Positions 20,451 through 45,555 of a DNA stretch of 64,000 bases are shown in pieces. Below the pieces are notes generated by a model, which worked only from the letters and a program-made list of their open reading frames with translations, ran no database searches and had not been told where the DNA came from. The stretch is taken from positions 124,001-188,000 of the IMG/VR virus record IMGVR_UViG_3300045256_000050, one strand, 5' to 3'. The first letter of the stretch is position 1, and each line of letters begins with the position of its first letter. The translations under genes were made by a program, and so were the position numbers.

Positions 20451-21464
20451 ATGACCCAACCAGATTTGAACCCCTGCAACGAACCCGGCCCGATCAAGGA
20501 CGTGAACATCGAGTCGGCCCCGCCGTTCTGCGACCCGAAGGGTCCGGCCGAGTGTTGCGACGGGGACGAGGGCGTTAATAGTTCCCAGAAAGCAGTCTCC
20601 GGTCGCTTCTTCGACTGGCTCGACGAACCCACCCAAAAGAAGACCGGCATCGGCCACGAGGCCAACTGCGACCCGATGCAGGCCGGTCACATTATTAACG
20701 AACAACACGGCATGGGTGTGAACCCGGACCGTAGCACCTTGTACCGCTACTCGAAGGCACTTCGGGGTTGCGACGAGGCGATGCAGGACTTGTTCCGTGA
20801 TCTCGTCGTGATCGACGAGTGGGGCAAGGCCAACCCGGTGCCGATCATGTGGGCCACGCAAGAGAAGGCCGTCGCCATGTTGCTGCAAGAGAACGTTCGG
20901 AAAGATCGGAGTCTTGCGGTTGACCGGATCAAGCTGCCGGTGTTGGCGATCCACAACTCGGGCATGCAGTTCCAGCAGAGCCGGTACTGCTACCACAAGG
21001 CCATCGACTACTTGCGTGACTGGCGGCGTAATAACGCACCCGGTTTCACGACGAAGGAACGTTACGAACGGGACACTGTTTTCGGCGTGGCGAAGGGTCT
21101 TCCGGTCGATGTGGAATACACCTTGTTTGCCTGGACGATGCACCGTGAGGACATTAACCAGATTGTCGAACAAGTGATTCTGAAATTCAGCCCCCTGGCA
21201 TATATAAGGGTGCGTGGTGTTTCCTGGGAGATTGGTGTCAAGCTAAATTCTGTAGCTAATAACATCAACCTCGATCCGGGAGACAAGAAGGTGAACGTGT
21301 TCAAGTACCAGTTCACCATGACGGCTGAGACTTACATCCCGCAGCCGGTGGTCCGCAAGAAAGCCGTCCTCAAGACCAGGACGGAAATCGTTGATAGCGT
21401 CGAGGACGACAACGTGAACGAAGTGATCGCAAGATTGGAACAAGCTGTTAAGGAATTGCAATGA
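20451..21464 (+). CDS. g15: Tail terminator/sheath stabilizer gp15-like
   Basis: LFRDLVV...VPIMWATQEK...LPVLAI...PVDVEYTL...QIVEQVILKFSP. Confidence 0.8.
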   Translation: MTQPDLNPCNEPGPIKDVNIESAPPFCDPKGPAECCDGDEGVNSSQKAVSGRFFDWLDEPTQKKTGIGHEANCDPMQAGHIINEQHGMGVNPDRSTLYRYSKALRGCDEAMQDLFRDLVVIDEWGKANPVPIMWATQEKAVAMLLQENVRKDRSLAVDRIKLPVLAIHNSGMQFQQSRYCYHKAIDYLRDWRRNNAPGFTTKERYERDTVFGVAKGLPVDVEYTLFAWTMHREDINQIVEQVILKFSPLAYIRVRGVSWEIGVKLNSVANNINLDPGDKKVNVFKYQFTMTAETYIPQPVVRKKAVLKTRTEIVDSVEDDNVNEVIARLEQAVKELQ

Positions 21465-21688: not shown

Positions 21689-24064
21689 ATGGCAATTTTA
21701 CGGGGCTTCCCGCCATCCAACACGATCTCGCCGAGTGTGCGTATCACCGAGAAGGACTTGAGCTTCATTGCTCCTGAACAATCTTTCCACCGGGCAGGTC
21801 TGGTTGGTTTCGCAAGCAAGGGGCCGATTAACGTTCCGACTTTGATCGCCACCCAACGTCAGTTGACCACGGTGTTTGGATATCCGCACCCGGAGTCGTC
21901 TGACCCATACATGCTCTACGCTGCTCAGCAATACCTGCTGATCGCTAACGAGTTGTGGATCGTGCGTGTCGCAGACGAAGATAACGTCAGCGACGAGCAG
22001 GCAACGACGGCTGAGGTAGATGTACCTTCGGCCGGTGGGCGTATCCAGATCGAGTCCGACGTGGCCGGTCCTTACACCTTCGACACTGACTCGTTCTTCC
22101 GTTGGCGGCTCAACGGCGTTCTCGCATCGAAGACGCTGGTTGTTCTCGCAGGCACCTACAGTGCTGCACAACTCGCCGAAGACCTGAACCTTCAGGTTGT
22201 GGGCGACATCGACGGCATCGAGTTCTATGTGACCGAAGACGACGAGATCGCCGTCATGACGACGTTCTCCTTCGGCCCGGACGCAGAACTGGAACTGGTT
22301 TCGGTACAGGACGCCATCTACGGTGGCCCGGCCGCAGCCCTCTTCCCGTCTGACCCGGAAGCGACCAACATCACTGGCCTCGGTACTGGTATGACCCGTG
22401 CCCGGCTGGTCGGTTCGAACGCTCAGTACCCGGAGTCTTACCAGACCGCCGGTGAGTACGACCTGACGGGCCTGACGAACCTTAACATCCAGATCGTCGT
22501 TGACGGCACCGACTCGGTGTTGATCGACAACGTGGTGCAGGTCATCGACCTTGCCGACCTGGAAGGTGCCGAGTGGACGGTTGACGAAATCGTTGACGAA
22601 ATCAACAGCCAGAAGGTCGAGAACGGCGGTTCGCTGCCGGGCGGCTGGACGGCATACGCCGAAGGCGACAACCTCGCTTTCCGCACCGACCACAGCGGCC
22701 GTGACGCCCGCATGTTGGTTAAGCCTGACTCGACGGCCCTCGACATCTTCGGTTTCGAGAGCGTGACGAAGGTTGGTACTTCTCCGATCCGTACCAGTGG
22801 CGACACTGACGTGGAAGTGGCTGGCCGTGTGAACGGTGACGCCAACGACACGGGGGCTGTGACCTTCACCTGTACCGCCGACTCGGCTGGTATCGACGGT
22901 AACAGCACTCAGATCGTGGTTGAGAACAACGTCCGTGAAGGTAACTTCCAGATCGCTGTCTACAACAACGGTGTGCAGGTCGAGTCGTTCGGTATGTTGA
23001 CGAAGGACGAGACGAGCCGGTTCTATGTGGAAACCTACATCGCCCTCGTGTCCGACTGGATTCGGGTTGTAGACAACACGGCTAACGCCGCCCCGCCGCT
23101 CGACGGCACCTACAGCCTGTCTGGTGGTTCTGACGGTATCCCGTCTGACCCGGACGACCAGGACGCATTGCTGATCGGTAATCAGTTGGCCTACACCGGC
23201 ATGTACGCTTTGAGCGAGCCGGAACAGATCGACCTTGACCTGATCGCCGCTCCGGGTCACTCCTCGACGAGCGTTGTGTTGGCCCTGCTCGATCTTTGCC
23301 AAAACGTCCGTATGGACTGCTTGGCGGTTATCGACTCGCCGTTCGGCATGACCGTGAACGAGATCATCGATTGGCAGAACGGTACTCACCCGTTGAACAC
23401 CACTCGGTTCGATTCCGACTTCGGTGCGCTCTACTGGCCGTGGGTTAAGATTCGTGACAACTTTAACAGAATCGACGTATGGGCACCGCCCTCGGGTTCT
23501 GTAATGGCAACCATCGCTCGCAGCGACCAGTTGTCGGCACCGTGGTTCGCACCGGCAGGTGTTAACCGTGGTACGGTCCCGAACATCATGGACGTGTTCT
23601 CCCGGCCGACGCTGGAAGAACGGGACTTGATGTACGGCTACCGCAACTGCATCAACCCGATTGTGCAGTTCGTGGACTTCGAAGGGTTCGTTGTCTGGGG
23701 TCAAAAGACCATGCAACGTCGCCCGACGGCCCTGGACCGTGTTAACGTTCGCCGCTTGATGTTCTACATCGAGAAGCGTATCCGTGCCGCCAGCCGCCAA
23801 CTGCTGTTCGATCCGCACGACGATGAACTCCGCTCGAAGTTCGTCCGTATCGCCACGGCGATCCTGACCGAAGTTCAAGTGGGTCGTGGTGTGACGGACT
23901 TCCGGGTGAAGTGCGACGAAGAGTTGAACCCGCCAGACGTAATTGACCGTAACGAACTGCGGGCACGCATCGGCGTCCAGCCGACCCGTGCTGCCGAGTT
24001 CATCTTCATCGAGTTCTCGATCCACCGGACGGGAAGCTTCGGCGAAGGTACTGACGCCTTCTAA
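21689..24064 (+). CDS. g18: Contractile tail sheath protein gp18
   Basis: SPSVRITEKDLS, GFASKGPIN, ALYWPWV, PWFAPAGVNRG, INPIV, WGQKT, LDRVNVRRL. Confidence 0.95.
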   Translation: MAILRGFPPSNTISPSVRITEKDLSFIAPEQSFHRAGLVGFASKGPINVPTLIATQRQLTTVFGYPHPESSDPYMLYAAQQYLLIANELWIVRVADEDNVSDEQATTAEVDVPSAGGRIQIESDVAGPYTFDTDSFFRWRLNGVLASKTLVVLAGTYSAAQLAEDLNLQVVGDIDGIEFYVTEDDEIAVMTTFSFGPDAELELVSVQDAIYGGPAAALFPSDPEATNITGLGTGMTRARLVGSNAQYPESYQTAGEYDLTGLTNLNIQIVVDGTDSVLIDNVVQVIDLADLEGAEWTVDEIVDEINSQKVENGGSLPGGWTAYAEGDNLAFRTDHSGRDARMLVKPDSTALDIFGFESVTKVGTSPIRTSGDTDVEVAGRVNGDANDTGAVTFTCTADSAGIDGNSTQIVVENNVREGNFQIAVYNNGVQVESFGMLTKDETSRFYVETYIALVSDWIRVVDNTANAAPPLDGTYSLSGGSDGIPSDPDDQDALLIGNQLAYTGMYALSEPEQIDLDLIAAPGHSSTSVVLALLDLCQNVRMDCLAVIDSPFGMTVNEIIDWQNGTHPLNTTRFDSDFGALYWPWVKIRDNFNRIDVWAPPSGSVMATIARSDQLSAPWFAPAGVNRGTVPNIMDVFSRPTLEERDLMYGYRNCINPIVQFVDFEGFVVWGQKTMQRRPTALDRVNVRRLMFYIEKRIRAASRQLLFDPHDDELRSKFVRIATAILTEVQVGRGVTDFRVKCDEELNPPDVIDRNELRARIGVQPTRAAEFIFIEFSIHRTGSFGEGTDAF

Positions 24065-24072
24065 AGAAACAA

Positions 24073-24110
24073 GGGGCACTCGCCCGCTGCGGCGGGTGCC
24101 CCTCTTCTTT
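24073..24110 (+). terminator. Rho-independent terminator after sheath
   Basis: GGGGCACTCGCC...GGCGGGTGCCCC then TCTTCTTT. Confidence 0.7.
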
Positions 24111-24143
24111 ATCACATCAAATCAAACTGAATAGGAGTAGAAG

Positions 24144-24686
24144 ATGCCGATGGGAATTGGTCGTGTCGGTGCGCCTGGAGTTATCTTCAAGCGTAAGTTC
24201 CGATGGACCCTACAAATCACGACTCCCTGCGGCTTCATTCCTGAGCATTACGTCAAGGTTGCAGCCCGCCCCAAGCTCAGCATTGAGAAGACGGAAGTGA
24301 ACTTCCTCAACGCAACGACGTGGATGCCTGGAAAAGCTAAGTGGGAACCGATCAATGTTACATATATAGATGTACCGGCCGCTGACATGGCTGGTCTGTG
24401 GAACTGGATCGCCACCGTCTACAACTTCACCGACCCGAACGGTTTGAGCCAGTCTGAGAAGGCCGGTTGGAATGGGGTGGGATTGTTAACCTTGTACGAC
24501 GGCTGCGGCAGTCCGCTGGAACGGTGGCTGTTGGGGTCGATGTTCCCGGAGTCGGTTGACTTCGGTGAGTTGGATTACTCGTCCTCGGATGAAGTGACTA
24601 TCGAATTGGGCTTGGTTTACTCCGACGTGCAATATCAGGGAATCTGTGGGCCTAACCCACAAGCATGCTGTAGAGGCTGCAACTAA
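24144..24686 (+). CDS. Tail tube protein gp19-like, copy 1
   Basis: FKRKFRW...VKVAARP...PGKAKWEPINVTYID...YDGCG...FGELDYSSS. Confidence 0.85.
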   Translation: MPMGIGRVGAPGVIFKRKFRWTLQITTPCGFIPEHYVKVAARPKLSIEKTEVNFLNATTWMPGKAKWEPINVTYIDVPAADMAGLWNWIATVYNFTDPNGLSQSEKAGWNGVGLLTLYDGCGSPLERWLLGSMFPESVDFGELDYSSSDEVTIELGLVYSDVQYQGICGPNPQACCRGCN

Positions 24687-24704
24687 CTCAGGAGCTTTAA
24701 CAAT

Positions 24705-25361
24705 ATGGCTACAAGAGATCGTAAGAATATGGGCATCGGGGTTATCGGCCGTCCCGATATGACCTTCAAGCGTAAGTTCCGGTGGACGTTCGAAATCGTT
24801 GGCTACTGCGACAACGAGAAGAACGTGATTCCTGAACACTTCGTCAAGGTCGCCGCTCGCCCGAACCTCAACATTGAGGAGACGGAAATCAACCACTTGA
24901 ACGCAAAAATGTGGATTCCGGGTAAGGGGTCGTGGGAAACCATCACCGTTACCTACATCGACGTTGCTCACGAAGAGATGCGTAACTTGTGGAACTGGCT
25001 CGCCACCGTGTACGACTTCACGGACCCGATCAAGCTGACCAACGCTGAGAAGCGGGATTGGGACGCTACCGGCGTTCTGAACATGTACGACGGCTGCGGC
25101 ACCCTACTGGAACAATGGCAGTTGCAGCACATGTGGCCGCAAGCCATCAACTTCGGCGACTTGGACTACTCGTCCTCGGAAGAAGCGACCATCGAACTGA
25201 CGCTGCGTTACAGCGACGTTCGTTACCGCTCGTACTGCCCGGACTTCACCCCGCAAGCTTGCTGCTCGCCGTGCGGCACTCGGGTCAAGAAGGTTCAGGG
25301 CAATGACTTTGGCTCGTTCGACCCGTCTCGGCAGGCCAACTTCAACGTGACCAGCGTCTAA
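24705..25361 (+). CDS. Tail tube protein gp19-like, copy 2
   Basis: Same motifs; WPQAINFGDLDYSSS. Confidence 0.85.
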   Translation: MATRDRKNMGIGVIGRPDMTFKRKFRWTFEIVGYCDNEKNVIPEHFVKVAARPNLNIEETEINHLNAKMWIPGKGSWETITVTYIDVAHEEMRNLWNWLATVYDFTDPIKLTNAEKRDWDATGVLNMYDGCGTLLEQWQLQHMWPQAINFGDLDYSSSEEATIELTLRYSDVRYRSYCPDFTPQACCSPCGTRVKKVQGNDFGSFDPSRQANFNVTSV

Positions 25362-25377
25362 GTGAACAGGAGAGATA

Positions 25378-26025
25378 ATGGCTGAAAAAATCCCGATGGG
25401 TATCGGAAACTTGGGCTTCTCGAACTTGATCTTCAAGCGTAAGTTCCGATTCACCTTTGAACTGCAAGATATTTGCGGCAATCAGAGTGTTCCGAAGCAC
25501 TATGTTAAGGTTGCGGCTCGTCCGAACCTTAACGTAGAAGAGGTTGAAGTCAACTTCCTCAACGCTACGACCTGGATTCCGGGTAAGGCTAAGTGGGAGA
25601 CGATGACCGTCACCTACATCGACGTGGCAACTGCGGAGATGGCCTCGTTGTACAACTGGCTCGCCAGCGTGTACAACTTCACCGACCCGATCCAACTCCA
25701 GATGGGTTCGCAGCGTAAGGACTACACTGCGACCGGCATCCTGAAGTTGTGGGACGGCTGTGGTCAGCTTCTCGAAACCTGGACGATGAAGGACGTGTGG
25801 CCGACGAACGTGAACTTCGGTGAACTCGACTACTCTTCTTCGGAAGAAGTGACCATTGAACTGACGCTCCGCTACAGCGACGTTAAGTACAAGAACGAGT
25901 GCCCTGGCTTCACGATTACGCCGTGCTGCTCGCCGTGTGGTGGGTCGAACCCGCCGCCTAACGGCAACACGCCGACTGGCCCAGGAACCGGCAACAAGAC
26001 TAACACGCCGGTCGCTGGCGTCTAA
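25378..26025 (+). CDS. Tail tube protein gp19-like, copy 3
   Basis: Same motifs; WPTNVNFGELDYSSS. Confidence 0.85.
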   Translation: MAEKIPMGIGNLGFSNLIFKRKFRFTFELQDICGNQSVPKHYVKVAARPNLNVEEVEVNFLNATTWIPGKAKWETMTVTYIDVATAEMASLYNWLASVYNFTDPIQLQMGSQRKDYTATGILKLWDGCGQLLETWTMKDVWPTNVNFGELDYSSSEEVTIELTLRYSDVKYKNECPGFTITPCCSPCGGSNPPPNGNTPTGPGTGNKTNTPVAGV

Positions 26026-26030
26026 GAGAC

Positions 26031-26060
26031 AAGAGGGCCGGAAACGGCCCTCTTACTTTT
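26031..26060 (+). terminator. Rho-independent terminator after tube cluster
   Basis: AAGAGGGCCG-GAAA-CGGCCCTCTT, ACTTTT. Confidence 0.8.
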
Positions 26061-26072
26061 TACAGGGGAACT

Positions 26073-26705
26073 ATGGGAAGACGAATGGGGATGGACTTCG
26101 GGTTGCCCGAACCGTTCAGCGGGAACTCGAAGCTCTGCAAGCGGAAGAACCGTTGGTTGTTCAAGATCGAAGGTCTGGTCGCCGACCAGAACCAGATCAA
26201 CTCGTTGCCGCCTCAGAAGTCGGCCCGCCCCGGCTTGCAGTTCAAGGAAATGGAAATCCGGCACCTGAACGAACACATCATGTACCCGCAGAAGCCGGAC
26301 TGGAAGCCGATCACACTCTCCCTCTACGACATCAAGACCAACGTCCTTCACCCGATCTTCGACTGGATCATGAAGGTGTACGAGCCGGACAAGACCGGCA
26401 AGTGGCATCCCGTGGTCAGGACCGGGCCGGTGTCGAATCGCTTCCTTCGGGACGGTATTCTGGAACTCTTCGACGGGTGCGGCAACGTACTTGAACGATG
26501 GACGTTCGAGCAGTGCTGGCCGCAGAACGTGGAATGGGGCGAGTTGGACATGGGCAGCAGTGAAGTGGTCATGTGCGACCTGACCCTGCGGTATGCTCGG
26601 GCCTACACCGAGGTTCTGCCGCCGCCACCGCCGGATCAGAACCAGAACAACGAAAATGGAGAGGGCCAACAGACCCTCTCCACTAACAGTTTGAACGAAC
26701 AATAA
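26073..26705 (+). CDS. Tail tube-fold protein, copy 4 (more diverged)
   Basis: KRKNRW...SARP...PDWKPITL...FDGCG...WPQNVEWGELD. Confidence 0.8.
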   Translation: MGRRMGMDFGLPEPFSGNSKLCKRKNRWLFKIEGLVADQNQINSLPPQKSARPGLQFKEMEIRHLNEHIMYPQKPDWKPITLSLYDIKTNVLHPIFDWIMKVYEPDKTGKWHPVVRTGPVSNRFLRDGILELFDGCGNVLERWTFEQCWPQNVEWGELDMGSSEVVMCDLTLRYARAYTEVLPPPPPDQNQNNENGEGQQTLSTNSLNEQ

Positions 26706-31378: not shown

Positions 31379-31422
31379 ACTTGATTACCTCAGACCTTCC
31401 ATAAGAATAGTAAGGAGAGTAC

Positions 31423-32601
31423 ATGGCAGACGACGTTTTCCGTCAGACTCGCAGAAAGATCACTGCGGATGAAGCTCGGCTACAGCAGCAACAACCGCCC
31501 GTTCCCCAGCAGCCTGTTGCGCCGCCGATGGGCGATGCGGCAGGTGTGAATCCGATGGATCGCATCCGCCAGATTCAGGAAGAAATGGCAGCAGACGGTG
31601 GTGAAGAACAGGTCGAGAAGTTCCAGCAGACCCCGTTCCGTCAGAACCCGGACTCCGGGTTCCAGATGTCCGGCAACATCCCGCCGGGCCTCCAAGAAGC
31701 CTTCGCCCGTCGTGGGCAACAAGCCCCGCCGTCCGCAGCACCGACTCCGGGCAACGTGAGTAAGAAGGGGCCGCAGCCTCGGGTCATCCCGATGAACCAG
31801 AACAGCGACCCGAACAGTGACGCCCTGGAAGCCTTGCTCGAACAGCTTGGCGGCAGCCTCACCTGGGATAAGGTCGAACTCCCGTCGAAGGGCAAGTTCT
31901 ACGACGGCATCCCCGGCACGCTGCACATCCGCCCGATGACGGGTGAAGAAGAACAAATCTTGGCGACCCCTCGGCACGTCCGTCGTGGTAAGGCCATCGA
32001 CATGATCTTCCAGAAGTGTATCAAGGAGAACATCGACACGGAGCAGTTGTTGTCTATGGACCGCACCTACCTGTTGATCTTCCTTCGTGGTATCTCCTAC
32101 ACCCCTGAGTACGACGTTGAAGTGAAGTGTCCCGAGTGTGCCACCAAGTTCAACACGATGATCGACCTGAACGCCATCGAAGTCGATGGGTGCCCGGCCG
32201 ACTTCGGCGTTGAGCAACTGCAAGGCGTACTCCCGACGACCGGGTTCCGGTTCAAGTACCGTCTCTCGACGGGTAAGGACGAACTGGCCGTCAACAAGTA
32301 CCGTGAGGATCGGGTCAAGATGTTCGGCGACCAGAGCGAGGACGACACGCTGCTGTACCGGACGGCTCTCATGCTCGAAGAGATCGAGGGCGTGACCGAC
32401 ACCCGTGAGATCAAGTTCCTGTTGGCGAAGCTGCCGATCAACGACGTGGCTCACCTTCGGAACGTCGTGTCCGACCCGCCGTTCGGCGTGGACACGGCCA
32501 TCGGGATGTCCTGCCCGGCCTGCACCGCTGAGTTCGAGGTAGACCTGCCTCTCGAAGCAAATTTTTTCTTCCCCAGGAAGAAGAAGCAGACCCATCAGTA
32601 A
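31423..32601 (+). CDS. g26: Baseplate hub assembly protein gp26-like with disordered Q/P-rich N-terminus
   Basis: VELPSKGKFY...IRPMTGEEEQIL...DRTYLLIFLRGISY...CPEC...CPAC...LEANFFF. Confidence 0.75.
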   Translation: MADDVFRQTRRKITADEARLQQQQPPVPQQPVAPPMGDAAGVNPMDRIRQIQEEMAADGGEEQVEKFQQTPFRQNPDSGFQMSGNIPPGLQEAFARRGQQAPPSAAPTPGNVSKKGPQPRVIPMNQNSDPNSDALEALLEQLGGSLTWDKVELPSKGKFYDGIPGTLHIRPMTGEEEQILATPRHVRRGKAIDMIFQKCIKENIDTEQLLSMDRTYLLIFLRGISYTPEYDVEVKCPECATKFNTMIDLNAIEVDGCPADFGVEQLQGVLPTTGFRFKYRLSTGKDELAVNKYREDRVKMFGDQSEDDTLLYRTALMLEEIEGVTDTREIKFLLAKLPINDVAHLRNVVSDPPFGVDTAIGMSCPACTAEFEVDLPLEANFFFPRKKKQTHQ

Positions 32602-32618
32602 TACTGTGGCAAACGCTC

Positions 32619-32777
32619 ATGGAGGAGCTATTTTTCTTCCAGTACCATATGCACATGAGCAAGAAAGACTGCATGACGCTGCCTGTGCATGAACGAAAGT
32701 GGTTGATCCAACGCTTCATCGACCAGAAGAAAAAGGAGAATGAGGCAATCGAGAAGGCGAAGCGAAAGAAGAAGTAA
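32619..32777 (+). CDS. gp51-like small ORF in the -1 frame of gp26 (not in the ORF track)
   Basis: MEELFFFQYHMHMSKKDCMTLPVHERKWLIQRFIDQKKKENE resembles the gp51 pattern; frame open back to slippery site at 32559. Confidence 0.65.
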   Translation: MEELFFFQYHMHMSKKDCMTLPVHERKWLIQRFIDQKKKENEAIEKAKRKKK

Positions 32778-33184
32778 TGTGTGACTGTTGGTTTAGCTGT
32801 AACGGATGTAATCGAGGATACGTCCCGAATATCACAGACGTTTTCGACTGCCCCTCCAAAGAGGAGCGGGAGTTGATGTCTGAAGGAGTCCGTTTGTTTA
32901 AGAACCGCAACGTCTGGCTGCGAAAGCACAACCAGAGAAAGTTTAACCAGCGTATGAAGTGGTACGAGGAGATGGAGAAGACCGGCGAAATGCCGGACGC
33001 CATGATCCAAGACATGCAAGACGCTGCCCACCGTAACGCAGGCCACGAGCCGGAACCCGCTTGTAACAAGCGATGGACGAGGATGGAAGTGATGTCGCAA
33101 CCCGGCACGTCCTTCCTCTACCGGACCGACGCTGGTCTGTCATTTCTGAACCACCCTCCAGGGTGGGATAACTCCCTGATTTGA
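32777..33184 (+). CDS. Hypothetical protein with N-terminal Cys cluster
   Basis: MCDC...CNGCN; coupled TAATG. Confidence 0.5.
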   Translation: MCDCWFSCNGCNRGYVPNITDVFDCPSKEERELMSEGVRLFKNRNVWLRKHNQRKFNQRMKWYEEMEKTGEMPDAMIQDMQDAAHRNAGHEPEPACNKRWTRMEVMSQPGTSFLYRTDAGLSFLNHPPGWDNSLI

Positions 33185-33215: not shown

Positions 33216-33953
33216 ATGGCAAGAAAGCAAAGATACCAGAACCCTGCCGTGGGCGACCAGATTGAACTTCGGATGCTCACGTTCAACTCTAACAACCTCG
33301 CCGACGTTACAGTTGAGCAGGTGGACGTATACTACCTCGATCCGCAAGCCAAGACCGCTGACAATCCTGACGGGAGACGACTCCTCGATACGATCTCCGG
33401 GGACGCTGTTACGGCCGAGGACACGGGGCAGTATATGTTCATCCTCTCTGCTGACTCCCCGAAGTATTTGATCGGGAAGTACATTGACGTATGGACGATT
33501 CGCACGTCGCAGGACATGCCTGCGTCCACGATCAATAACTACTTTGAAATCTTTCCCCAATTGTGGTACACTTCGCCTGTACCGATTGTTTACGATTTCA
33601 GTTTTCACTTCCAACCAAATCGTCTGCGGCAGGGTTCTCGGCAATATCTCATGGTCGAAGTGATCCCGAACGTTCCACGTTCGACCGATCTCGCCCGATA
33701 CTACACCAACCTCGCCATCGGTGCTGATCTCAGCATCACCATTGAACAACAATGCGGCGACTGCGTGCCGAAGGAGCGTGATCTGCGGGTCGTTGTAGAC
33801 GATGAGCCACTGACGCACCGAGAGAAGTGTTTCGGGTACTACCAGTTGGACACGGAAGAGATGGAATGTGGCATCTACGACGTTACGTTCAAGATGGAGT
33901 TCGGCGGGAACGTATACCTCTCGGACCGTATGCAACTCCAAATCTACAAGTAA
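33216..33953 (+). CDS. Hypothetical beta-rich, probably baseplate/structural protein
   Basis: AAGGA RBS; Ig-like strand pattern; structural context. Confidence 0.55.
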   Translation: MARKQRYQNPAVGDQIELRMLTFNSNNLADVTVEQVDVYYLDPQAKTADNPDGRRLLDTISGDAVTAEDTGQYMFILSADSPKYLIGKYIDVWTIRTSQDMPASTINNYFEIFPQLWYTSPVPIVYDFSFHFQPNRLRQGSRQYLMVEVIPNVPRSTDLARYYTNLAIGADLSITIEQQCGDCVPKERDLRVVVDDEPLTHREKCFGYYQLDTEEMECGIYDVTFKMEFGGNVYLSDRMQLQIYK

Positions 33954-35455: not shown

Positions 35456-36013
35456 ATGACCGAATTCAACTCTGACGATTTCGAAGTAGACGACCTGATG
35501 GCGGAACAGGCCAAGAAGAAAAAGAAGCTCAACTCCAAGAAGAAGGGCAACCGGGTGGAGTTGGGGCTGTGTAAGGTACTGACCGAACATTTCGGTTGTT
35601 CCTTCTCCCGTAGCGTAGGCTCGGGGAACGGCTGGGGCCGTGGTGTTAATCTACCGTCCCACGCCAAGACGACGTTCACGGGCGACATCTGCCCGCCCGA
35701 GGGCTTCCTGTGGGTGATCGAATCCAAAGGCGGCTACGAGGACGACATTGACCTGAACGCCATTATCGGCGAGAATAACAGCCAACTCCAGAAGTTCATC
35801 AATCAGGTGATGGACGACCACGGGCGGTGCGGCCGTAAGCCCATCGTCGTTTGGAAACGCTCCCGTAAGCCCGCCCTGGCTATGATCCAACAACAGGAAC
35901 TCCCGGCCGGGTACGACAAGGACCGGATGTTCTGGAACGGCTGGGTCATCGTCAACCTCGTTGATCTTCTGCAAGGCACACCACGAACCTACTGGTTCGA
36001 AGAGGGAAAGTAA
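35456..36013 (+). CDS. Holliday junction resolvase-like PD-(D/E)xK nuclease
   Basis: SKKKGNRVE...SVGSG...GDI...VIESK. Confidence 0.75.
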   Translation: MTEFNSDDFEVDDLMAEQAKKKKKLNSKKKGNRVELGLCKVLTEHFGCSFSRSVGSGNGWGRGVNLPSHAKTTFTGDICPPEGFLWVIESKGGYEDDIDLNAIIGENNSQLQKFINQVMDDHGRCGRKPIVVWKRSRKPALAMIQQQELPAGYDKDRMFWNGWVIVNLVDLLQGTPRTYWFEEGK

Positions 36014-37053
36014 TGAATCTCAAAGGGCGTCTGATCGCCGTCGATTTCGATGGCACTATTGTCGAACACGAATTCCCGAGGATCGGGAAGCCGAAGCCTG
36101 GGGCCATTGAAACCCTCAAGGCGTTGATGGCCGCAGGGGCGAAGCTCATCCTGAACACTTGCCGTGAAGACGAAGGCAACAAGAAGTTTCTGACCGAAGC
36201 TGTTGACTTCTGTAAGAAACACGGCGTCGAGTTCGTCAGCGTGAATGAGAACCGCCTGGAGGACGACTTCCGGGACGACGAGCGTTACCTGCGTCGGAAG
36301 CCCTACGCCCACATCTACATCGACGACCGGAACTTCGGCGGCTTCCCCGGCTGGGACGTGATCGGCAAGGTGTTGTTGCAGGACTACGTTTACTCCGGCA
36401 CGCTCAACGACGTGGAGACGCAGAAGCGATGGAAACAGATTGACGAACAAGCTGGCGTCGGCGAAACCAAGAAGGCATACGCCCACCGGCTGCGGGACGG
36501 GTGGTTCGAGAAGTACGCCCCGGAGGATCAGCCGGGCATCGACATCGGCTGCCAGCACGACCCGCTCAACCAGACGTTCCGCCGGTACGACCTGATCTTC
36601 GGCGACTCGGACGCCCAGCAGATGTTCGGGGTGCCCGACGAGAGCTTCTTCACCGTGTACGCCAGCCACGTTCTTGAACACATCAAGAACCCGGCCGAAG
36701 CTCTCCAGAACTGGTGGCGGATTCTGAAGCCGGGAGGCCACCTGATCGTCATGGTGCCGCACCGGGACCGCTACGAGAAGAAGAAGGAACTGCCGAGCTA
36801 CTGGAACCACGACCACAAGTGGTTCTTCATGCCCACGGAGAGCGAAGCCCCATGCACCATCGGCGTCCTGCCGTTGTTGATGAAGACCATCCCAGGGGGC
36901 GAACTGGTTTCACTGACGGTACTGGACGAGGGCTGGGTGGAAACCCCGCCGGACCAGCACGCCGTCGGCGAGTTCTCCATCGAAGCGATCATCCGCAAGC
37001 CGCTGCCCCAGGTCGCACAAAAGGACCGTCAAATCATCCCGATGAGCCGCTAA
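36013..37053 (+). CDS. Fusion of a HAD-family phosphatase and a class I SAM methyltransferase
   Basis: IAVDFDGT...LNTCRE...RKPYAHIYIDDR; GIDIGC...ASHVLEH...WWRILKPGG. Confidence 0.8.
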   Translation: MNLKGRLIAVDFDGTIVEHEFPRIGKPKPGAIETLKALMAAGAKLILNTCREDEGNKKFLTEAVDFCKKHGVEFVSVNENRLEDDFRDDERYLRRKPYAHIYIDDRNFGGFPGWDVIGKVLLQDYVYSGTLNDVETQKRWKQIDEQAGVGETKKAYAHRLRDGWFEKYAPEDQPGIDIGCQHDPLNQTFRRYDLIFGDSDAQQMFGVPDESFFTVYASHVLEHIKNPAEALQNWWRILKPGGHLIVMVPHRDRYEKKKELPSYWNHDHKWFFMPTESEAPCTIGVLPLLMKTIPGGELVSLTVLDEGWVETPPDQHAVGEFSIEAIIRKPLPQVAQKDRQIIPMSR

Positions 37054-39632: not shown

Positions 39633-40655
39633 TCAAGATTGTAGCTTGACGCCGAACGACGCTGCGTTGACGGCCGAGTCCACCCAGGCAACGTTGCCGT
39701 CGGGGTTTCTCTCGAAGATGCCGGTACGGTAAGCGAACCCGGCCCCGGCGTACTTGTCGCCGGATTCCGACGTGCTGCCGTTGGAGCTACACTGCAATCG
39801 GAGTGGGCGGGCCGAGCCGTTCGCCACCTGGGTGTAGGCGCTCACCTGGATGCCGTAGATGTTACCGGCATCTTGTGAAACCGTCAGGAAGCGGTAGTTG
39901 TCAATGTCCCCGGCGTTCGACGTGTAGTTGTAGTCGGTGGTGTTGGCGGGCCACTCGTCTACGTTCTGGTAGTTCGAGGCCGTGCTGGGCGTCCAGTTGT
40001 TCGTGATGCCGTTACTCGTAACGGCACTCGACACCACCTTCACGTCACCGAGGAAGTCGTTGTTGTACGAGCCGGTCGTGTCCGCCATGTAGATGTCGTC
40101 GAACCGCATGGTGCCGTTCGCCAAGACGAACAGGTTCCACGCCCGAGCGTCGTTGGTATCGGAGACGGTGTTGACGCCGGTTACGTTAAGGTACTGAGTT
40201 CCGTTGACCCGCACCTGAATCGAACCGCTCGTTCCGGTCCCGATCACCACCTTAGCCTCGATGTAGTACCAAGTGTTAGACGGACTCAACGTGAGCGTCG
40301 AGTCGGAGCCTAGCTGCGTGTTGGCCCGAGTGGCGTATATCTTGCCGGTAGACGCCCGAATCCCGAAGTCACACAAGCCGTTGTTGTATTCGTTGCAGAC
40401 GTAGAAAATCCGGTCGTCCTGTGCCGGAAGGGACGACATGAAGAGGCCGCAACCGAAGATGACGGTGGTGACTCCGTTCCAGATCGTCTGAGGGCTGCGA
40501 TAGTTGCCGTCGTTGGTGAACGAGAGGGAGTAGCCGTTCCCCGACGCCCGAGGCGACTGCTGAAAGGTGACGTTGTTACTGAGTGAAACACCCCGCAGCG
40601 CAGCATCGGCTACGCTCGTGTAGTAATCCATTCCGTCCAGCCAAACGAGAGCCAT
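39633..40655 (-). CDS. LamG/ConA-like virion protein, array copy 4
   Basis: MALVWLDGMD...WYYIEAKV...FDDIY...GDVKV...NYQNVDE...NAASFGVK. Confidence 0.7.
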   Translation of the reverse strand: MALVWLDGMDYYTSVADAALRGVSLSNNVTFQQSPRASGNGYSLSFTNDGNYRSPQTIWNGVTTVIFGCGLFMSSLPAQDDRIFYVCNEYNNGLCDFGIRASTGKIYATRANTQLGSDSTLTLSPSNTWYYIEAKVVIGTGTSGSIQVRVNGTQYLNVTGVNTVSDTNDARAWNLFVLANGTMRFDDIYMADTTGSYNNDFLGDVKVVSSAVTSNGITNNWTPSTASNYQNVDEWPANTTDYNYTSNAGDIDNYRFLTVSQDAGNIYGIQVSAYTQVANGSARPLRLQCSSNGSTSESGDKYAGAGFAYRTGIFERNPDGNVAWVDSAVNAASFGVKLQS

Positions 40656-40663
40656 CCTTCTCC

Positions 40664-42469
40664 TTACCGATACAACGTTGTGTTAGAGCGTTTCGTAACG
40701 GGCTTCACGAATCTCTTCGTGATCTGCCCTTCGAAGTTGCTGTAAGACTTTTTCTTGTATTTACGCAGGCGGCACACGGCTACTGCGGCCAACTTCCCTT
40801 CCACCTGCCCGTTACTCAGTGAAATGTCCGTTACCTCGAACCTCGTGTCGTCCGGCTTTCGCACACAGCACATGTTGTCGTCGTCCTGACGGCAAGCACC
40901 ACGATTCTTGACCTTCCGGGTGTTCAACAAGCTGCGAGGCCGAACAACCGCACCGCCAGTGCCAGGGAAATAGTAGAACTGGTTGATCGTGTTGCCACCG
41001 TTAAGCACCGCACCGCCTGAAGCGACGAACCCGATGTCAATCGGGGCCACGCCCCCACACACCACCCCGCCAGAGGCGTTGATGTTTGTGAGAATGCGCC
41101 CCACACCGGCAGTACCGGCACAAACCGCCCCGCCCTGGCCGAACAACCAAAGCTGGATGTCCACCCGGCCGTTACAGACTGCCCCGCCCGTTCCAGGGAA
41201 GTAGTAGAACTGGTTGATTCGGTGAGAGCCGCCACAGACTGCCCCACCAGAGCCGGTGTTCGATACAATCCGACCGATGATGGCGATTCCGCCACAGACT
41301 GCCCCGCCAGAGCCGGTGTTCGATACAATGCGACCGACTCGGGCCGTACCGCCTCCCAACGACCCGCCACTGACAGAAGAAACGAAGTCGTCGATGCCGT
41401 GGCCCGCTACGACAACCCCGCCGATGATCGGGATGATGCGTGTTACGTTAACACGGGCCAGACCGGCACAGTTCACGCCGCCGAAGCCGATGTAGTCCGG
41501 GGTTGGCGAGAGGGCTTGCCCGCCCGGCGTAGCACCGCCAGTGCCGTTGATTCGGTATACCATCCGAATCGTCGCCGTGCTACCGCCTCGCACACCGCCT
41601 CGTGGGTCGAAGTCGGCGAAGACTCTAGCCGTGCCGCCACCACGAACACCCGCCCCGACGAGGACGACGCTCTGTACGCCGAATTTATCTGCCAATCCAC
41701 CGACGACGGCACCGCCGAACGTCGGTGTGATCTGTTGTTGCGGAACGCTACCGCCGCCGACCACACCGCCCGAGGCCCGTGGTCCCCAGATGAAGGTGCG
41801 GATGGACGTGCCGCCCGCTTTAACCCCTGCCGTTGGTAAAGGAATGTACTGAACGGGTGCCGTGCCGCCACCCTTTACGCCGCCAGATGTCGTAAGACCC
41901 TGGAAGCCGCCGACGGTCGATGTGCCACCGCCGACCACACCACCGGACGTGAACTGCGAGAACAGTAGGACGGCCGAGCCTCCCGGCCGGGCACCGCCGC
42001 TAGTCGTCTGGTTCCAGAAGTTGTTACGAAGGATCGCACCACCGGGCCGGGCACCGCCCTGGCCGGTGAAGAAGTACCGCTGTAGCAACGCACCAGAACC
42101 GCCGACCAACGCACCCTGGCTGAGCGGGGTGTAGTTGGCGTAAATCTTTCGGACGGGGTTAGCCGCACCGCCGCCTTTGATACCACCACGGGCGACGATC
42201 AGGTTGATGTTGTCGGCCAGCATCTCGAAGAAGACCTGACTGACCTGAGCCTGACCGGGAGCGGATTGGGCCGTAACCTGAAGTTGTACCGAGGAAACCC
42301 GAGCGGGAGGATTTGGGTGGTTGGCAGCAACATTCAGTGTGGCCTGCGACATCCGCACCACACCCGTCGTCGCCAGACCCAGGACTTCGATACGAGCCTG
42401 CGTCAACCGAACCGTTGACGGTTCGGTGCCCAGGCTTTTGACGACGACTTGTGTTACTCTTGCTGTCAT
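40664..42469 (-). CDS. Gly-rich repetitive fibre-like protein
   Basis: N-terminal ARVTQ-like repeats, many (S/T)GG(A/V)xxGG units, Cys-containing C-terminus. Confidence 0.75.
   Translation of the reverse strand: MTARVTQVVVKSLGTEPSTVRLTQARIEVLGLATTGVVRMSQATLNVAANHPNPPARVSSVQLQVTAQSAPGQAQVSQVFFEMLADNINLIVARGGIKGGGAANPVRKIYANYTPLSQGALVGGSGALLQRYFFTGQGGARPGGAILRNNFWNQTTSGGARPGGSAVLLFSQFTSGGVVGGGTSTVGGFQGLTTSGGVKGGGTAPVQYIPLPTAGVKAGGTSIRTFIWGPRASGGVVGGGSVPQQQITPTFGGAVVGGLADKFGVQSVVLVGAGVRGGGTARVFADFDPRGGVRGGSTATIRMVYRINGTGGATPGGQALSPTPDYIGFGGVNCAGLARVNVTRIIPIIGGVVVAGHGIDDFVSSVSGGSLGGGTARVGRIVSNTGSGGAVCGGIAIIGRIVSNTGSGGAVCGGSHRINQFYYFPGTGGAVCNGRVDIQLWLFGQGGAVCAGTAGVGRILTNINASGGVVCGGVAPIDIGFVASGGAVLNGGNTINQFYYFPGTGGAVVRPRSLLNTRKVKNRGACRQDDDNMCCVRKPDDTRFEVTDISLSNGQVEGKLAAVAVCRLRKYKKKSYSNFEGQITKRFVKPVTKRSNTTLYR
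41215..41340 (-). repeat. Near-tandem ~60-bp coding duplication
   Basis: CCGCCACAGACTGCCCC(A/G)CCAGAGCCGGTGTTCGATACAAT twice = RIVSNTGSGGAVCGG x2; INQFYYFPGTGGAV also twice in the gene. Confidence 0.75.
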
Positions 42470-42479
42470 TGATTATCTT

Positions 42480-43487
42480 TCACGCTTGGACTTTCACGCC
42501 GAAGGTGGCTGCGTTAATTGTGGCGTCCGTCCAGGCCACGTTTCCATCCGGGTTTCTTTCGAACATGCCGAAGAATGTTTGGTAAGTATCCGACACATAC
42601 TTGTCGCCGCTCTCGCTCAGGTTCGAGTTCGACATCGCTTGCAATCGCAAGCTCCTGACGTAAGCATCCGTTTTCCGGGCGTAGCCGTTAACCATGACCC
42701 CCTTCATGTTCCCGGATTCGCTGAGGGTAGTGAAGAAGTAGCGGTCGGCGTTGCTGACCGTCGATGTTTCCACATAGTCCGTGTCGTCGTTCGGCGTGGC
42801 TTCATCAACACACTGGTAGTTCGACCCGGTGCTGGCGGTCCAGCTATTCACGTCGCCGTTGGCCCGAGGCAACAACTGGTAGACCTTCACGTCGCCCATG
42901 AAGTCGTTGTTCACTGATCCGGTCGTGTCCCACATCACCAGATCGTCGAGGAAGTTGTTGTTCGCCGACGATAGGAACCGGAGTTGAGAAACCCCGGTGC
43001 CGGTGCCCTGGGCCTGTGTGTTCTGTCCGGTCAGGTTTAAGACTGTCTGGCCGTCCAGTTTCACAACAACCGACCCGCTGGTGCCCGAGGCGATGACGAC
43101 TTTGCATTCGATGTAGTGCCAAGTGTCCAACGCAAAAGCCACGTCGCTGCCAAGCTGCGTACCAGCACGGGTCACATACAGAACGCCCGACGCTTTGGTT
43201 GAGATCGTGATCTGGTTGCCGGTGTTCGACGAGTTGAACCACCAAACGTGGTCGTTTTGCAAGCCGCTCGATCCGCAGTACCAACCCGCCCCGAACCCGA
43301 CGGTCGTGGCCTCGTTCCAAAGCCCCATCGGGGACTTCCACTCGCAGTCCGTCTGGAACTTGATGGAACTCCCCGTCCCGGAGATACGAGGCGTCTGGCC
43401 GGTGATCGGGCTGAGTAGATAAACACCCTTCTGGGCTGCGTTGGCAACGGACGTGTAGTCCATGCCGTCCATAAACAATAGTGCCAT
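42480..43487 (-). CDS. LamG/ConA-like virion protein, array copy 3
   Basis: MALLFMDGMD...same conserved motifs. Confidence 0.7.
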   Translation of the reverse strand: MALLFMDGMDYTSVANAAQKGVYLLSPITGQTPRISGTGSSIKFQTDCEWKSPMGLWNEATTVGFGAGWYCGSSGLQNDHVWWFNSSNTGNQITISTKASGVLYVTRAGTQLGSDVAFALDTWHYIECKVVIASGTSGSVVVKLDGQTVLNLTGQNTQAQGTGTGVSQLRFLSSANNNFLDDLVMWDTTGSVNNDFMGDVKVYQLLPRANGDVNSWTASTGSNYQCVDEATPNDDTDYVETSTVSNADRYFFTTLSESGNMKGVMVNGYARKTDAYVRSLRLQAMSNSNLSESGDKYVSDTYQTFFGMFERNPDGNVAWTDATINAATFGVKVQA

Positions 43488-44485
43488 TATGACTCCAGTT
43501 TGATGCCAAAGTAAGCCGCATTGACCCCGCTCTGCGTCCACGCCACCGACGTACTCGGGTCCGTCTCGAACACGGTCAGGTGCGGGTAGTAGCTGTTAAA
43601 GGTCTGCTGGGCCGACCCGGTGGCCTCGACCCCACCGGATTTCGCAATCGCCCGGATTGATTTCAGTTCAACGTCAGTCTGGATTGCGACCAGATATACC
43701 GCTACGCCTTTGATGTCGGCGAAGTTGCTGACCGTCTGGAAGGTGTAGTTATCCTTGTTACCCACGCCTGTTGTCGAAACGTAGTCGGTTGTGTTGTAAG
43801 GCGGCGTGTCGTCAACGCACTGGTAGTTCGACCCGGTGCTGGCGGTCCAGTTGTTCGTGTCGCCGTTGGCCGTCGGCAGGAAGTATCTTACTTTACACGG
43901 GCCGAGGAAGTCGTTGTTCGTACTCCCGTTGCCGTCACAGATGTAGATGTCGTCGAAGAGGTTGCCGCTGAACCTCACGTCGTCGTAACCGAGGAACCGG
44001 ACCGAACCGACCCCGGTCGTGCCGGTGTTCACGTTCCCCGTGTCGATCACCTGTGACCCGTCGATGCGCACCACTACCCGCCCCACGGTTGCACTGACGA
44101 TGAACTTGACTTCGAAATAGTGCCAACCTTCATTGATTAAGGTTGGTGCGGGGCTGTAGGTCGTGGAACCGACGGTGAATCTCGGACTGGTGTCGAACCA
44201 CTGGAACTGGAACAAAACACCCGCCGTCTGGCTCAACAGCCGAAGGAAAGTCCGGTTGTCCCGCTGGATGATCGTGGGGTACATGGCGAACCCAACGATG
44301 AGCGTGGTCGGGGTGTTGTCCAGAGGGTAGGCGATGTACCGGCCGAATGGGATGCGGATCGACGACCCCACGCTGAATCGGCCCGTTTGCGCAACGGTGA
44401 CGCCGCCGTTGGAAACCTGCCAAGTCGATTTCATGTCGGCGTTCGTGGTGTAAGTGTCGAATCCGTCTGCGAGCAGTAGTGTCAT
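43487..44485 (-). CDS. LamG/ConA-like virion protein, array copy 2
   Basis: MTLLLADGFD...same motifs; TAATG coupling. Confidence 0.7.
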   Translation of the reverse strand: MTLLLADGFDTYTTNADMKSTWQVSNGGVTVAQTGRFSVGSSIRIPFGRYIAYPLDNTPTTLIVGFAMYPTIIQRDNRTFLRLLSQTAGVLFQFQWFDTSPRFTVGSTTYSPAPTLINEGWHYFEVKFIVSATVGRVVVRIDGSQVIDTGNVNTGTTGVGSVRFLGYDDVRFSGNLFDDIYICDGNGSTNNDFLGPCKVRYFLPTANGDTNNWTASTGSNYQCVDDTPPYNTTDYVSTTGVGNKDNYTFQTVSNFADIKGVAVYLVAIQTDVELKSIRAIAKSGGVEATGSAQQTFNSYYPHLTVFETDPSTSVAWTQSGVNAAYFGIKLES

Positions 44486-45516: not shown

Positions 45517-45555
45517 AGACGGGAAACCTCCTTGATACGTCTATATACCCGTAGG

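Follow-up and report, generated by a model that had tools for sequence, protein, structure and literature searches.

A probable -1 ribosomal frameshift joining the gp26-like and gp51-like tail-hub chaperone genes of a huge environmental phage

The question raised by this locus is whether a huge environmental phage makes the counterparts of gp26 and gp51, the two tail-hub assembly chaperones of T4, from one gene by a -1 ribosomal slip. The window analysed was the whole stretch of 64,000 nucleotides, positions 124,001 to 188,000 of the IMG/VR record IMGVR_UViG_3300045256_000050. The first-pass annotation had proposed a programmed -1 frameshift at the end of the gp26-like ORF, on either of two overlapping heptamers, producing products of about 392 and 451 aa equivalent to a G/GT pair. 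The sequence confirmed the observation. The gp26-like ORF ends GAA GCA AAT TTT TTC TTC CCC AGG ... TAA, both heptamers are in X XXY YYZ phase, and the -1 frame is open from 32532 to 32774 (stop 32775-32777), reading FFLPQEEEADPSVILWQTL followed by MEELFFFQYHMH. The predicted sizes were exact, being 392 aa for the short product and 382 + 69 = 451 aa for the long product. The features of the locus are as follows.

31412..31417 (+), Shine-Dalgarno sequence AAGGAG of the gp26-like gene, read from the 20 bases upstream of ATG31423
31423..32601 (+), gp26-like gene in the 0 frame, encoding the 392-aa short product, of which the first ~140 residues are a Q/P-rich, variable N-terminal extension
31873..32568 (+), PF12322 core (residues 151-382), shared by the short and long products, with two CxxC knuckles and a predicted fold resembling a tail assembly chaperone
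32529..32531 (+), TGA closing the -1 frame upstream of the slip site
32559..32565 (+), heptamer A AAT TTT, probably accessory at most
32562..32568 (+), conserved slippery heptamer T TTT TTC (last base of Asn380, then Phe381 and Phe382), the proposed site of the -1 tandem slip
32568..32618 (+), trans-frame linker of 17 codons in the -1 frame (LPQEEEADPSVILWQTL), overlapping the last 10 codons and the stop of the 0 frame and then covering the apparent intergenic spacer
32576..32585 (+), purine tract GGAAGAAGAA, 7 nt 3' of the heptamer, a possible 5' arm of a stimulatory stem, not established
32599..32601 (+), TAA stop of the 0-frame (short) product
32619..32777 (+), Gp51_C-like extension domain (52 codons plus stop), annotated elsewhere as a separate small ORF and forming the C-terminus of the 451-aa long product
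32632..32641 (+), pyrimidine tract UUUUUCUUCC (second FFF motif), a possible 3' arm of the same stem, not established

The occurrence of the pattern in the window was first compared with chance. TTTTTTC occurs 4 times in the window against 8.6 expected, and an open stretch of about 29 codons is also common. The pattern is therefore not beyond chance by itself and its significance comes only from comparison with relatives. DNA contigs of two runs from one sample cross the T6 run without indels, so it is not an assembly error.

The conservation of the slip site was analysed in 59 distinct related junctions, having 45-56% protein identity and GC of 29-57%. The heptamer T TTT TTC is invariant in 59 of 59, including three synonymous positions, and the T run is exactly 6 in 59 of 59. 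The codons are xxT TTT TTC TTC in 58 of 59 junctions, while Phe codon use elsewhere in the same genes is 378 TTT to 378 TTC. The second FFF motif, located 20 codons downstream, varies freely and showed 38 different codon combinations. Nucleotide entropy was 0/0/0 at the heptamer against 0.8-0.9 at third positions of the second FFF. The first-pass annotation had also listed A AAT TTT as a slip site, and here it needs correction, as the X XXY YYZ form of this heptamer is intact in only 46 of 59 relatives. GCC/ACC/GCG AAT, A AGT and A TCT break it, while the two Gly variants keep it as G GGT TTT.

The -1 frame is open from the heptamer to the end of the extension in 59 of 59 junctions, and in 24 of them it opens only 6 nt before the heptamer. 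The six apparent intergenic codons 3' of the 0-frame stop evolve as coding sequence in the -1 frame, with entropy of 1.11/0.69/1.63 at codon positions 1/2/3 against 0.77/0.41/1.30 in the extension. The -1 peptide is conserved right up to the slip site, Ser12 being nearly invariant and Leu19, Glu21, Glu22 and Phe24 invariant. The codon equivalent to ATG32619 is ATG in 19 loci and Ala or Leu in 40, and twenty loci have no ATG, GTG or TTG between the opening of the -1 frame and that position. In the window ATG32619 has no Shine-Dalgarno sequence (upstream gtggcaaacgctc), whereas 34 of 56 long ORFs in the window, as well as the gp26-like gene, have one. A search of 1.8 billion representatives revealed 248 relatives of the extension, with ragged called starts.

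A natural experiment was found in L084, a locus of an uncultured relative, which has tandem PF12322 genes. One is a 371-aa short form ending ...GFFFP..., in which the heptamer is lost (GGG TTC TTT TTC). The other is a 327-aa in-frame fusion reading ...GFFLPSP... with different codons (TTG for Leu), which is exactly the predicted trans-frame junction. Both forms are hard-wired at this locus, and its fusion (P0027) is the only natural fusion found. In the model of the natural fusion the linker is predicted to be disordered and the extension forms a helix-loop-helix, although the P0027 model has no alignment depth in its extension.

The same arrangement was observed in cyanophages. In S-PM2, gp26 (S-PM2p207) and gp51 (S-PM2p208, 57 aa) have the same order, the same -1 frame relation and the same heptamer in the same phase after the conserved FF. 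In 57 of 57 cyanophage junctions T TTT TTC was present in the same phase with a -1 ORF of 61-68 codons, and the gp51 start position carries a non-start Leu codon in 21 of them. In contrast to the window, the 0-frame stop in the cyanophages follows one codon after FF and the linker is only 3 residues. These are annotated as two independent genes, and no report of a frameshift was found in the literature searched. The heptamer is also present in Atu_ph07.

The identity of the two parts was examined using profile searches. The gp26-like product matched Pfam PF12322 T4_baseplate over residues 151-382 with E = 5.4e-18 (65.9 bits against a cut-off of 24.5) and phrog_150 'baseplate hub' with E = 1.8e-20. 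T4 gp26 is PF12322 alone (E = 8.8e-64), while T4 gp51 is PF12322 over residues 1-201 (E = 3.9e-52) plus a C-terminal tail, indicating that the two are paralogues. T4-type gp51 proteins carry PF12322 plus PF28602 Gp51_C. The extension matched phrog_20255 with E = 1e-5, but its direct link to T4 gp51 was not significant using BLASTP, HMM comparison including a 148-sequence HMM (E = 0.2-1) or hhalign, which also failed to join the two PF12322 cores and was hence insensitive. Close homologues of the extension carry no precomputed Pfam domain. The gp51-like assignment is therefore transitive and rests on one bridging sequence plus a lead from the protein atlas. The extension profile matched S-PM2 gp51 (20.1 bits, E = 4e-8), the profile of T4-type gp51 C-termini matched the same residues (22.8 bits, E = 7e-9), and the atlas pointed to a Gp51_C set at 0.94. 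Pfam hits of the extension to DUF6760 and Tma16 were sub-threshold or composition-driven; DUF6760 was absent from 14 control genomes and gave 19 bits in the phage's own genome.

The predicted fold of the core was compared with known structures. The AlphaFold model of the window core had pLDDT of 86.3, and the three best of 48,161 PDB chains were 3klu (Z 5.7, 86 of 119 residues), 3fgx (Z 5.5, 85 of 96) and 2ob9 (Z 5.5, 98 of 104), while unrelated chains started at Z 3.6. These are the three solved tail assembly chaperone structures (PMC9603447), namely HK97 gp13, YqbN and Rbstp2171, and the same three appeared for the P0027 model. The Z-scores are modest, and searches of the PDB by sequence and by Foldseek gave nothing.

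The presence of a stimulatory RNA element was also investigated. The MFE structure of the window pairs 32576-32585 with 32632-32641, beginning 7 nt after the slip site, but this stem is not significant (z = -1.3; MFE z-scores were -1.3 and -1.9). Duplex energies were -14 to -18 kcal/mol in the window's subclade, and the family-wide permutation test was weak (p = 0.033, not corrected for phylogeny). RNAalifold on 53 junctions did not recover this stem and found only a hairpin forced by the EExFF coding sequence, starting about 60 nt downstream of the heptamer. Thus no conserved stimulatory RNA was found. Such an element is not obligatory, as P2 uses nearly the same site, TTTTTTG, without a hairpin (PMC3091744).

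Taken from comparison of DNA sequences, these results indicate that one gene very probably yields two proteins. Most ribosomes would read the gp26-like ORF to its TAA and make the 392-aa short form, that is the PF12322 core plus a short basic tail. A fraction would slip back one base on T TTT TTC, when tRNA-Phe occupies both the P site (UUU) and the A site (UUC) and both can re-pair perfectly in the -1 frame, and would continue through the 17-residue linker into the 52-residue helical Gp51_C-like domain, giving a 451-aa long form with the same N-terminus. The pair would correspond to T4 gp26 (core) and gp51 (core plus C-terminal domain). It is inferred to work like lambda G/GT or P2 E/E+E', as a non-structural chaperone pair made in a fixed ratio that assembles the tape-measure and hub complex.

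The rival that survives best, although unlikely, is that of two ordinary genes, in which the small ORF is translated only from ATG32619 by coupling or re-initiation after the gp26 stop 17 nt upstream. The ATG is present in the window and in 18 of the 58 other distinct junctions, the distance to the stop suits coupling, locus L001 and S-PM2 have TAATG or a 2-nt gap, and gene callers predict the small ORF separately. Some independent or re-initiated synthesis of a free 52-aa protein in the window and its 18 nearest relatives cannot be excluded. However, the reading of two ordinary genes without frameshifting is opposed by the missing Shine-Dalgarno sequence, the loss of the ATG in 40 of 59 loci and the -1 frame coding constraint 5' of it, and it cannot explain the invariant synonymous sites of the heptamer or the natural in-frame fusion. 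Transcriptional slippage on the T6 run, giving mRNAs with one extra U, is slightly less likely still, although no RNA data exist to exclude it. The site is a homopolymer, and distant relatives join the extension at T6-T7 runs in either the -1 or the +1 frame, so that insertion and deletion slippage could both serve. Productive slippage, however, usually appears to need runs of 8-9 or more, whereas here the run is held at 6 although the FFF codons could extend it to 10 without changing the protein, and it is held in one phase in 59 + 57 loci, which matters to ribosomes and not to polymerase. An assembly indel or a recent mutation splitting a single gp51-like gene, as the error-prone homopolymer and the single fused ORF of one relative (P0027) might suggest, is effectively refuted by the same two-frame arrangement in 116 distinct junctions from unrelated samples, by the agreement of contigs from two runs and by the different codons and the separate short paralogue of the fused relative.

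Frameshifting in tail assembly chaperones is textbook for lambda, P2 and Mu. In lambda G/GT and P2 E/E+E' (Xu, Hendrix and Duda 2004, as cited in PMC3091744 and PMC9024508), two products likewise share an N-terminus by a -1 slip on an X XXY YYZ heptamer near the end of the short ORF, the -1 ORF has no start of its own and no hairpin is obligatory; the P2 site differs from the present one by a single base. There is no sequence similarity to G- or E-type chaperones, and the core is about 230 aa and looks like two chaperone-like halves, each ending in a CxxC knuckle, where G and E are about 90-140 aa. The gene in the window is not located between tube and tape-measure genes, as the sheath and four tube genes lie at 21689-26705, about 4.7 kb upstream, with no recognisable tape-measure gene adjacent. 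In Bacillus phage SP-15 the order is tube, gp26-like, small ORF and tape measure, and in Mel-JY01 the homologue lies between the tube gene and the next large gene. T4 encodes the two forms as separate, divergently transcribed paralogues; its gene 26 ends KEFFELL with no heptamer, is followed by gene 25 and also has an internal-start product, 26'. No paper linking gp26 or PF12322 with a frameshift or with tail assembly chaperones was found in literature lacking most subscription journals, so prior description cannot be excluded.

The locus and its relatives suggest that T4-type, cyanophage and huge-phage hubs use the same short/long chaperone logic, that T4 gp26 and gp51 are the two forms fixed as separate genes, and that the small 'gp51' genes annotated in marine cyanophages and huge phages are mis-annotated and should be joined to gp26 by a -1 shift, which also gives a rule for annotation pipelines. 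A broader hypothesis, somewhat more likely than not, is that the PF12322 family is the missing G/GT-type tail assembly chaperone of T4-like, cyano-, jumbo and huge myoviruses. The ancestral state would be one gene with a recoding site at the poly-U run after the conserved C-terminal FF, the shift being -1 in the window's clade, the cyanophages, Atu_ph07 and XacN1, and +1 in SP-15, Mel-JY01 and others. The essential, non-structural gp51 of T4 and its partner gp26 would then be the hard-wired long and short forms produced by duplication, and the thousands of cyanophage 'gp51' genes would be frameshift extensions of gp26. T4 gp51 is required for assembly but absent from the particle, and gp26 and gp51 are listed as hub assembly chaperones (PMC3004832, Table 2). 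One depositor has also named a gp51 homologue 'tape measure protein assembly chaperone' (MT409116.1).

The window is part of a 245-kb viral record judged about 48% complete, so it comes from a huge phage, and it derives from hot-spring or microbial-mat metagenomes. The upstream ORF ends GAA GCA AAT TTT TTC TTC CCC AGG ... TAA, and both of the slippery heptamers named in the first-pass annotation, A AAT TTT and T TTT TTC, are present and in phase. The features of the junction were as follows.

31423..32601, ORF of 392 aa, preceded by AAGGAG
32529-32531, TGA closing the -1 frame
32532 to 32774, stretch over which the -1 frame is open
32562-32568, site at which a slip gives a product of 382 + 69 = 451 aa
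32619..32777, ORF of 52 codons in the -1 frame, with no Shine-Dalgarno sequence

The single sequence is not beyond chance, as TTTTTTC occurs 4 times in the window against 8.6 expected. Contigs of two sequencing runs cross the T6 run without indels. Strain variants were observed at 32466 (C>G) and 32602 (T>C) in contigs of a second run from the same sample, the latter changing a linker codon in the -1 frame 3' of the 0-frame stop. The long ORF belongs to Pfam T4_baseplate (PF12322; 65.9 bits, E = 5e-18, residues 151-382) and to phrog_150 'baseplate hub', and its first ~140 residues are a variable, low-complexity extension. The small ORF matched only an unnamed PHROG, along with weak hits to DUF6760 and Tma16.

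The conservation of the junction was analysed in related loci. IMG/VR yielded 80 loci encoding relatives at 45-56% identity, which together with LR756511.1 gave 59 distinct junctions with GC between 29% and 57%. The codons for x-F-F-F are xxT TTT TTC TTC in 58 of 59 junctions, while the heptamer T TTT TTC is invariant in 59 of 59. The preceding residue varies (Asn, Ser, Gly) but its codon always ends in T, and the T run is exactly 6 in all 59 although synonymous codons could make it 10. Phe codon use elsewhere in the same genes is 378 TTT to 378 TTC, and a second F-F-F motif 20 codons downstream, inside the -1 ORF, showed 38 different codon combinations. Nucleotide entropy is zero across the heptamer and the following Leu codon, compared to 0.8-0.9 at third positions of this control motif. 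The heptamer A AAT TTT, which the first-pass annotation had listed first, is intact in only 46 of 59; the two Gly variants keep it as G GGT TTT, so an accessory role is possible.

The reading frame and the start codon were then examined across the same junctions. The -1 frame is open from the heptamer to the end of the small ORF in 59 of 59, and in 24 of them it opens only 6 nt upstream of the heptamer. The ATG at 32619 corresponds to ATG in 19 loci and to Ala or Leu codons in 40, and twenty loci have no ATG, GTG or TTG anywhere between the opening of the -1 frame and that position. Yet the -1 peptide is conserved across it (FFLPxEEGxxPSxxLWxxLxEExFFFQYH), with Leu19, Glu21, Glu22 and Phe24 invariant. 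The apparent intergenic spacer is coding, as the six codons that lie 3' of the 0-frame stop show codon-position periodicity in the -1 frame with entropy of 1.11/0.69/1.63 at positions 1/2/3, like the extension proper (0.77/0.41/1.30). Gene callers also disagree on the start; a profile search of 1.8 billion representatives revealed 248 relatives, almost all of which are short called ORFs whose starts fall at many different profile positions.

One of these hits, P0027, served as a natural control. It is a 327-aa single ORF consisting of a PF12322 core followed in frame by ...GFF-LPSP... and the extension, which is exactly the predicted trans-frame junction, and its codons are GGG TTT TTC TTG CCA, so it is not a homopolymer sequencing error. 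Immediately upstream in the same contig, the uncultured relative L084 (1883-3984 for the tandem region), lies a second PF12322 gene of 371 aa ending ...GFFFPIAK...*, whose heptamer is destroyed (GGG TTC TTT TTC) and which has no -1 extension. Downstream are a conserved 244-aa gene, a MoxR-like AAA ATPase and a DUF2201_N protein. This lineage therefore encodes the short and long forms as two genes, which argues that both products are functional and both are needed. No other such fusion was found.

The relation of the extension to T4 was analysed next. In T4, gene 26 (208 aa, ending KEFFELL*) is followed by gene 25 and has no heptamer and no extension, while gene 51 is transcribed divergently. 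The Pfam search revealed that T4 gp51 is itself PF12322 over residues 1-201 (E = 3.9e-52), like gp26 (E = 8.8e-64), with an extra ~48-residue tail, and T4-type gp51 proteins carry PF12322 plus PF28602 (Gp51_C) in precomputed annotation. Direct comparison of the window's extension with the T4 tail is not significant, and the link rests on other evidence. The ESM Atlas places the extension next to clusters named for Gp51_C (score 0.94; 18 of 30 hits). In cyanophage S-PM2 the annotated 57-aa 'gp51 baseplate hub assembly catalyst' lies directly after gp26, in the -1 frame; an HMM of 148 extension relatives matches S-PM2 gp51 at 20.1 bits (E = 4e-8), and an HMM of 34 T4-type gp51 C-termini matches the same residues at 22.8 bits (E = 7e-9). 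The label 'gp51-like' given in the first-pass annotation is therefore accepted in the cyanophage sense, although membership in Gp51_C remains formally inconclusive.

Related arrangements were observed in other phages. S-PM2 gp26 ends CAG TCT TTT TTC GCA TAA, with the -1 frame open across the heptamer. In 57 distinct cyanophage-type junctions (47-78% identity) the heptamer T TTT TTC is present in the same phase in 57 of 57, the 0-frame stop is always 10 nt after the start of the heptamer, and the -1 ORF is 61-68 codons long. The codon at the S-PM2 gp51 ATG position is ATG in 30, TTG in 6 and CTC, CTA or CTG in 21, so that the gp51 start codon is missing in about a third, while Phe codon use elsewhere is 455 TTT to 202 TTC. 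The gp51 genes of marine cyanophages are probably frameshift extensions of gp26. Agrobacterium phage Atu_ph07 (CAT TTT TTC GCA TGA) and Xanthomonas phage XacN1 (GCT TTT TTT ATT) also have -1 frame extensions. In the distant PF12322 genes of Bacillus phage SP-15, Microcystis phage Mel-JY01, Streptococcus phage vB_SagM-GXN1 and LR756508.1, the start-less extension lies in the +1 frame. In SP-15 and Mel-JY01 it joins at a T6-T7 run after the conserved FF (GAA TTT TTT CAC; AAC TTT TTT TGG), while in vB_SagM-GXN1 and LR756508.1 the junction is a shorter TTT C motif (TTC TTT CGT; AAC TTT CTA). The extension HMM gave E = 1.7e-10, 2.9e-8 and 1.8e-4 for SP-15, Mel-JY01 and LR756508.1, respectively. This implies +1 (or -2) recoding in some lineages, and the annotated small genes truncate the conserved domain.

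T4 gp26 and gp51 are listed as hub assembly chaperones, and gp51 is required for assembly but absent from the particle (PMC3004832). The AlphaFold model of the window's core (pLDDT 86.3) was compared with 48,161 PDB chains, and its three best matches were YqbN (3klu, Z 5.7), Rbstp2171 (3fgx, Z 5.5) and the HK97 chaperone (2ob9, Z 5.5), while unrelated chains start at Z 3.6. The same three appeared for the model of P0027, and PMC9603447 names exactly these as the solved tail assembly chaperones. The Z-scores are modest, and Foldseek and sequence searches found nothing; what counts is that these three rank on top together. ORF19 of the Vibrio cholerae PLE element (5ir0) is the next match (Z 4.9). 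In the two models (window 31834-32598 and P0027) the chaperones aligned to different halves of the core, residues 1-98 of one and about 139-237 of the other, each half ending in a CxxC knuckle, which suggests that the core may be a tandem duplication of a chaperone-like fold. In the P0027 model the linker is predicted to be disordered and the extension to be a helix-loop-helix.

The best explanation for these observations is tandem -1 slippage of two tRNA-Phe on U UUU UUC, which would give a minority long form, although the production of this form is inferred from sequence comparison alone. P2 uses TTTTTTG without a hairpin. No family-wide stimulator was found; in the window and its subclade a purine tract 7 nt downstream can pair with the second FFF motif, but the support for this is weak. 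Sole independent initiation of the small ORF is contradicted by the lack of a conserved start codon, by the coding character of the spacer and by the natural control in L084, although a minor free 52-aa product in the window's subclade cannot be excluded. Transcriptional slippage is disfavoured, in the absence of RNA data, by the fixed run length of 6 and the fixed phase. An artefact is excluded. The proposed mechanism is the known chaperone frameshift; the family, however, in T4-like, cyano-, jumbo and huge myoviruses, has not been linked to it in any paper found by a literature search that omitted most subscription journals. The reading of T4 gp26 and gp51 as hard-wired short and long forms is likewise new within that search.

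The gene order around the junction was also compared. In SP-15 the order is sheath, tube, gp26-like, small ORF, tape measure, and Mel-JY01 appears to be similar; this is the classical G/GT or E/E+E' position. In the window the sheath and four tube paralogues lie 5-10 kb upstream, but no recognisable tape-measure gene is adjacent. The depositor of Acinetobacter phage Octan (MT409116.1) names the gp51 homologue 'tape measure protein assembly chaperone', so at least one annotator has already treated gp51 as a tape-measure chaperone. The stop of the extension ORF overlaps the ATG of the next ORF, suggesting translational coupling to the long form's frame. The neighbouring features of the window are given below.

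20451-21464, sheath-stabiliser-like gene
21689-24064, sheath gene
24144-26705, four tandem paralogous tail tube genes (phrog_4542)
32775-32779, TAATG overlap of the extension stop with the ATG of the next ORF
32777..33184, ORF of 135 aa with a Cys-rich N-terminus and no family hit
33216..33953, gene of 245 aa conserved after the extension in locus L001 and in L084, with no family match
35456-37053, RusA-like resolvase gene followed by a gene combining phosphoheptose-isomerase-like and methyltransferase-like regions, just downstream of the tail module
39636-45519 (- strand), four paralogous genes of 332-343 aa (phrog_2448, unknown function), interrupted by a 601-aa gene
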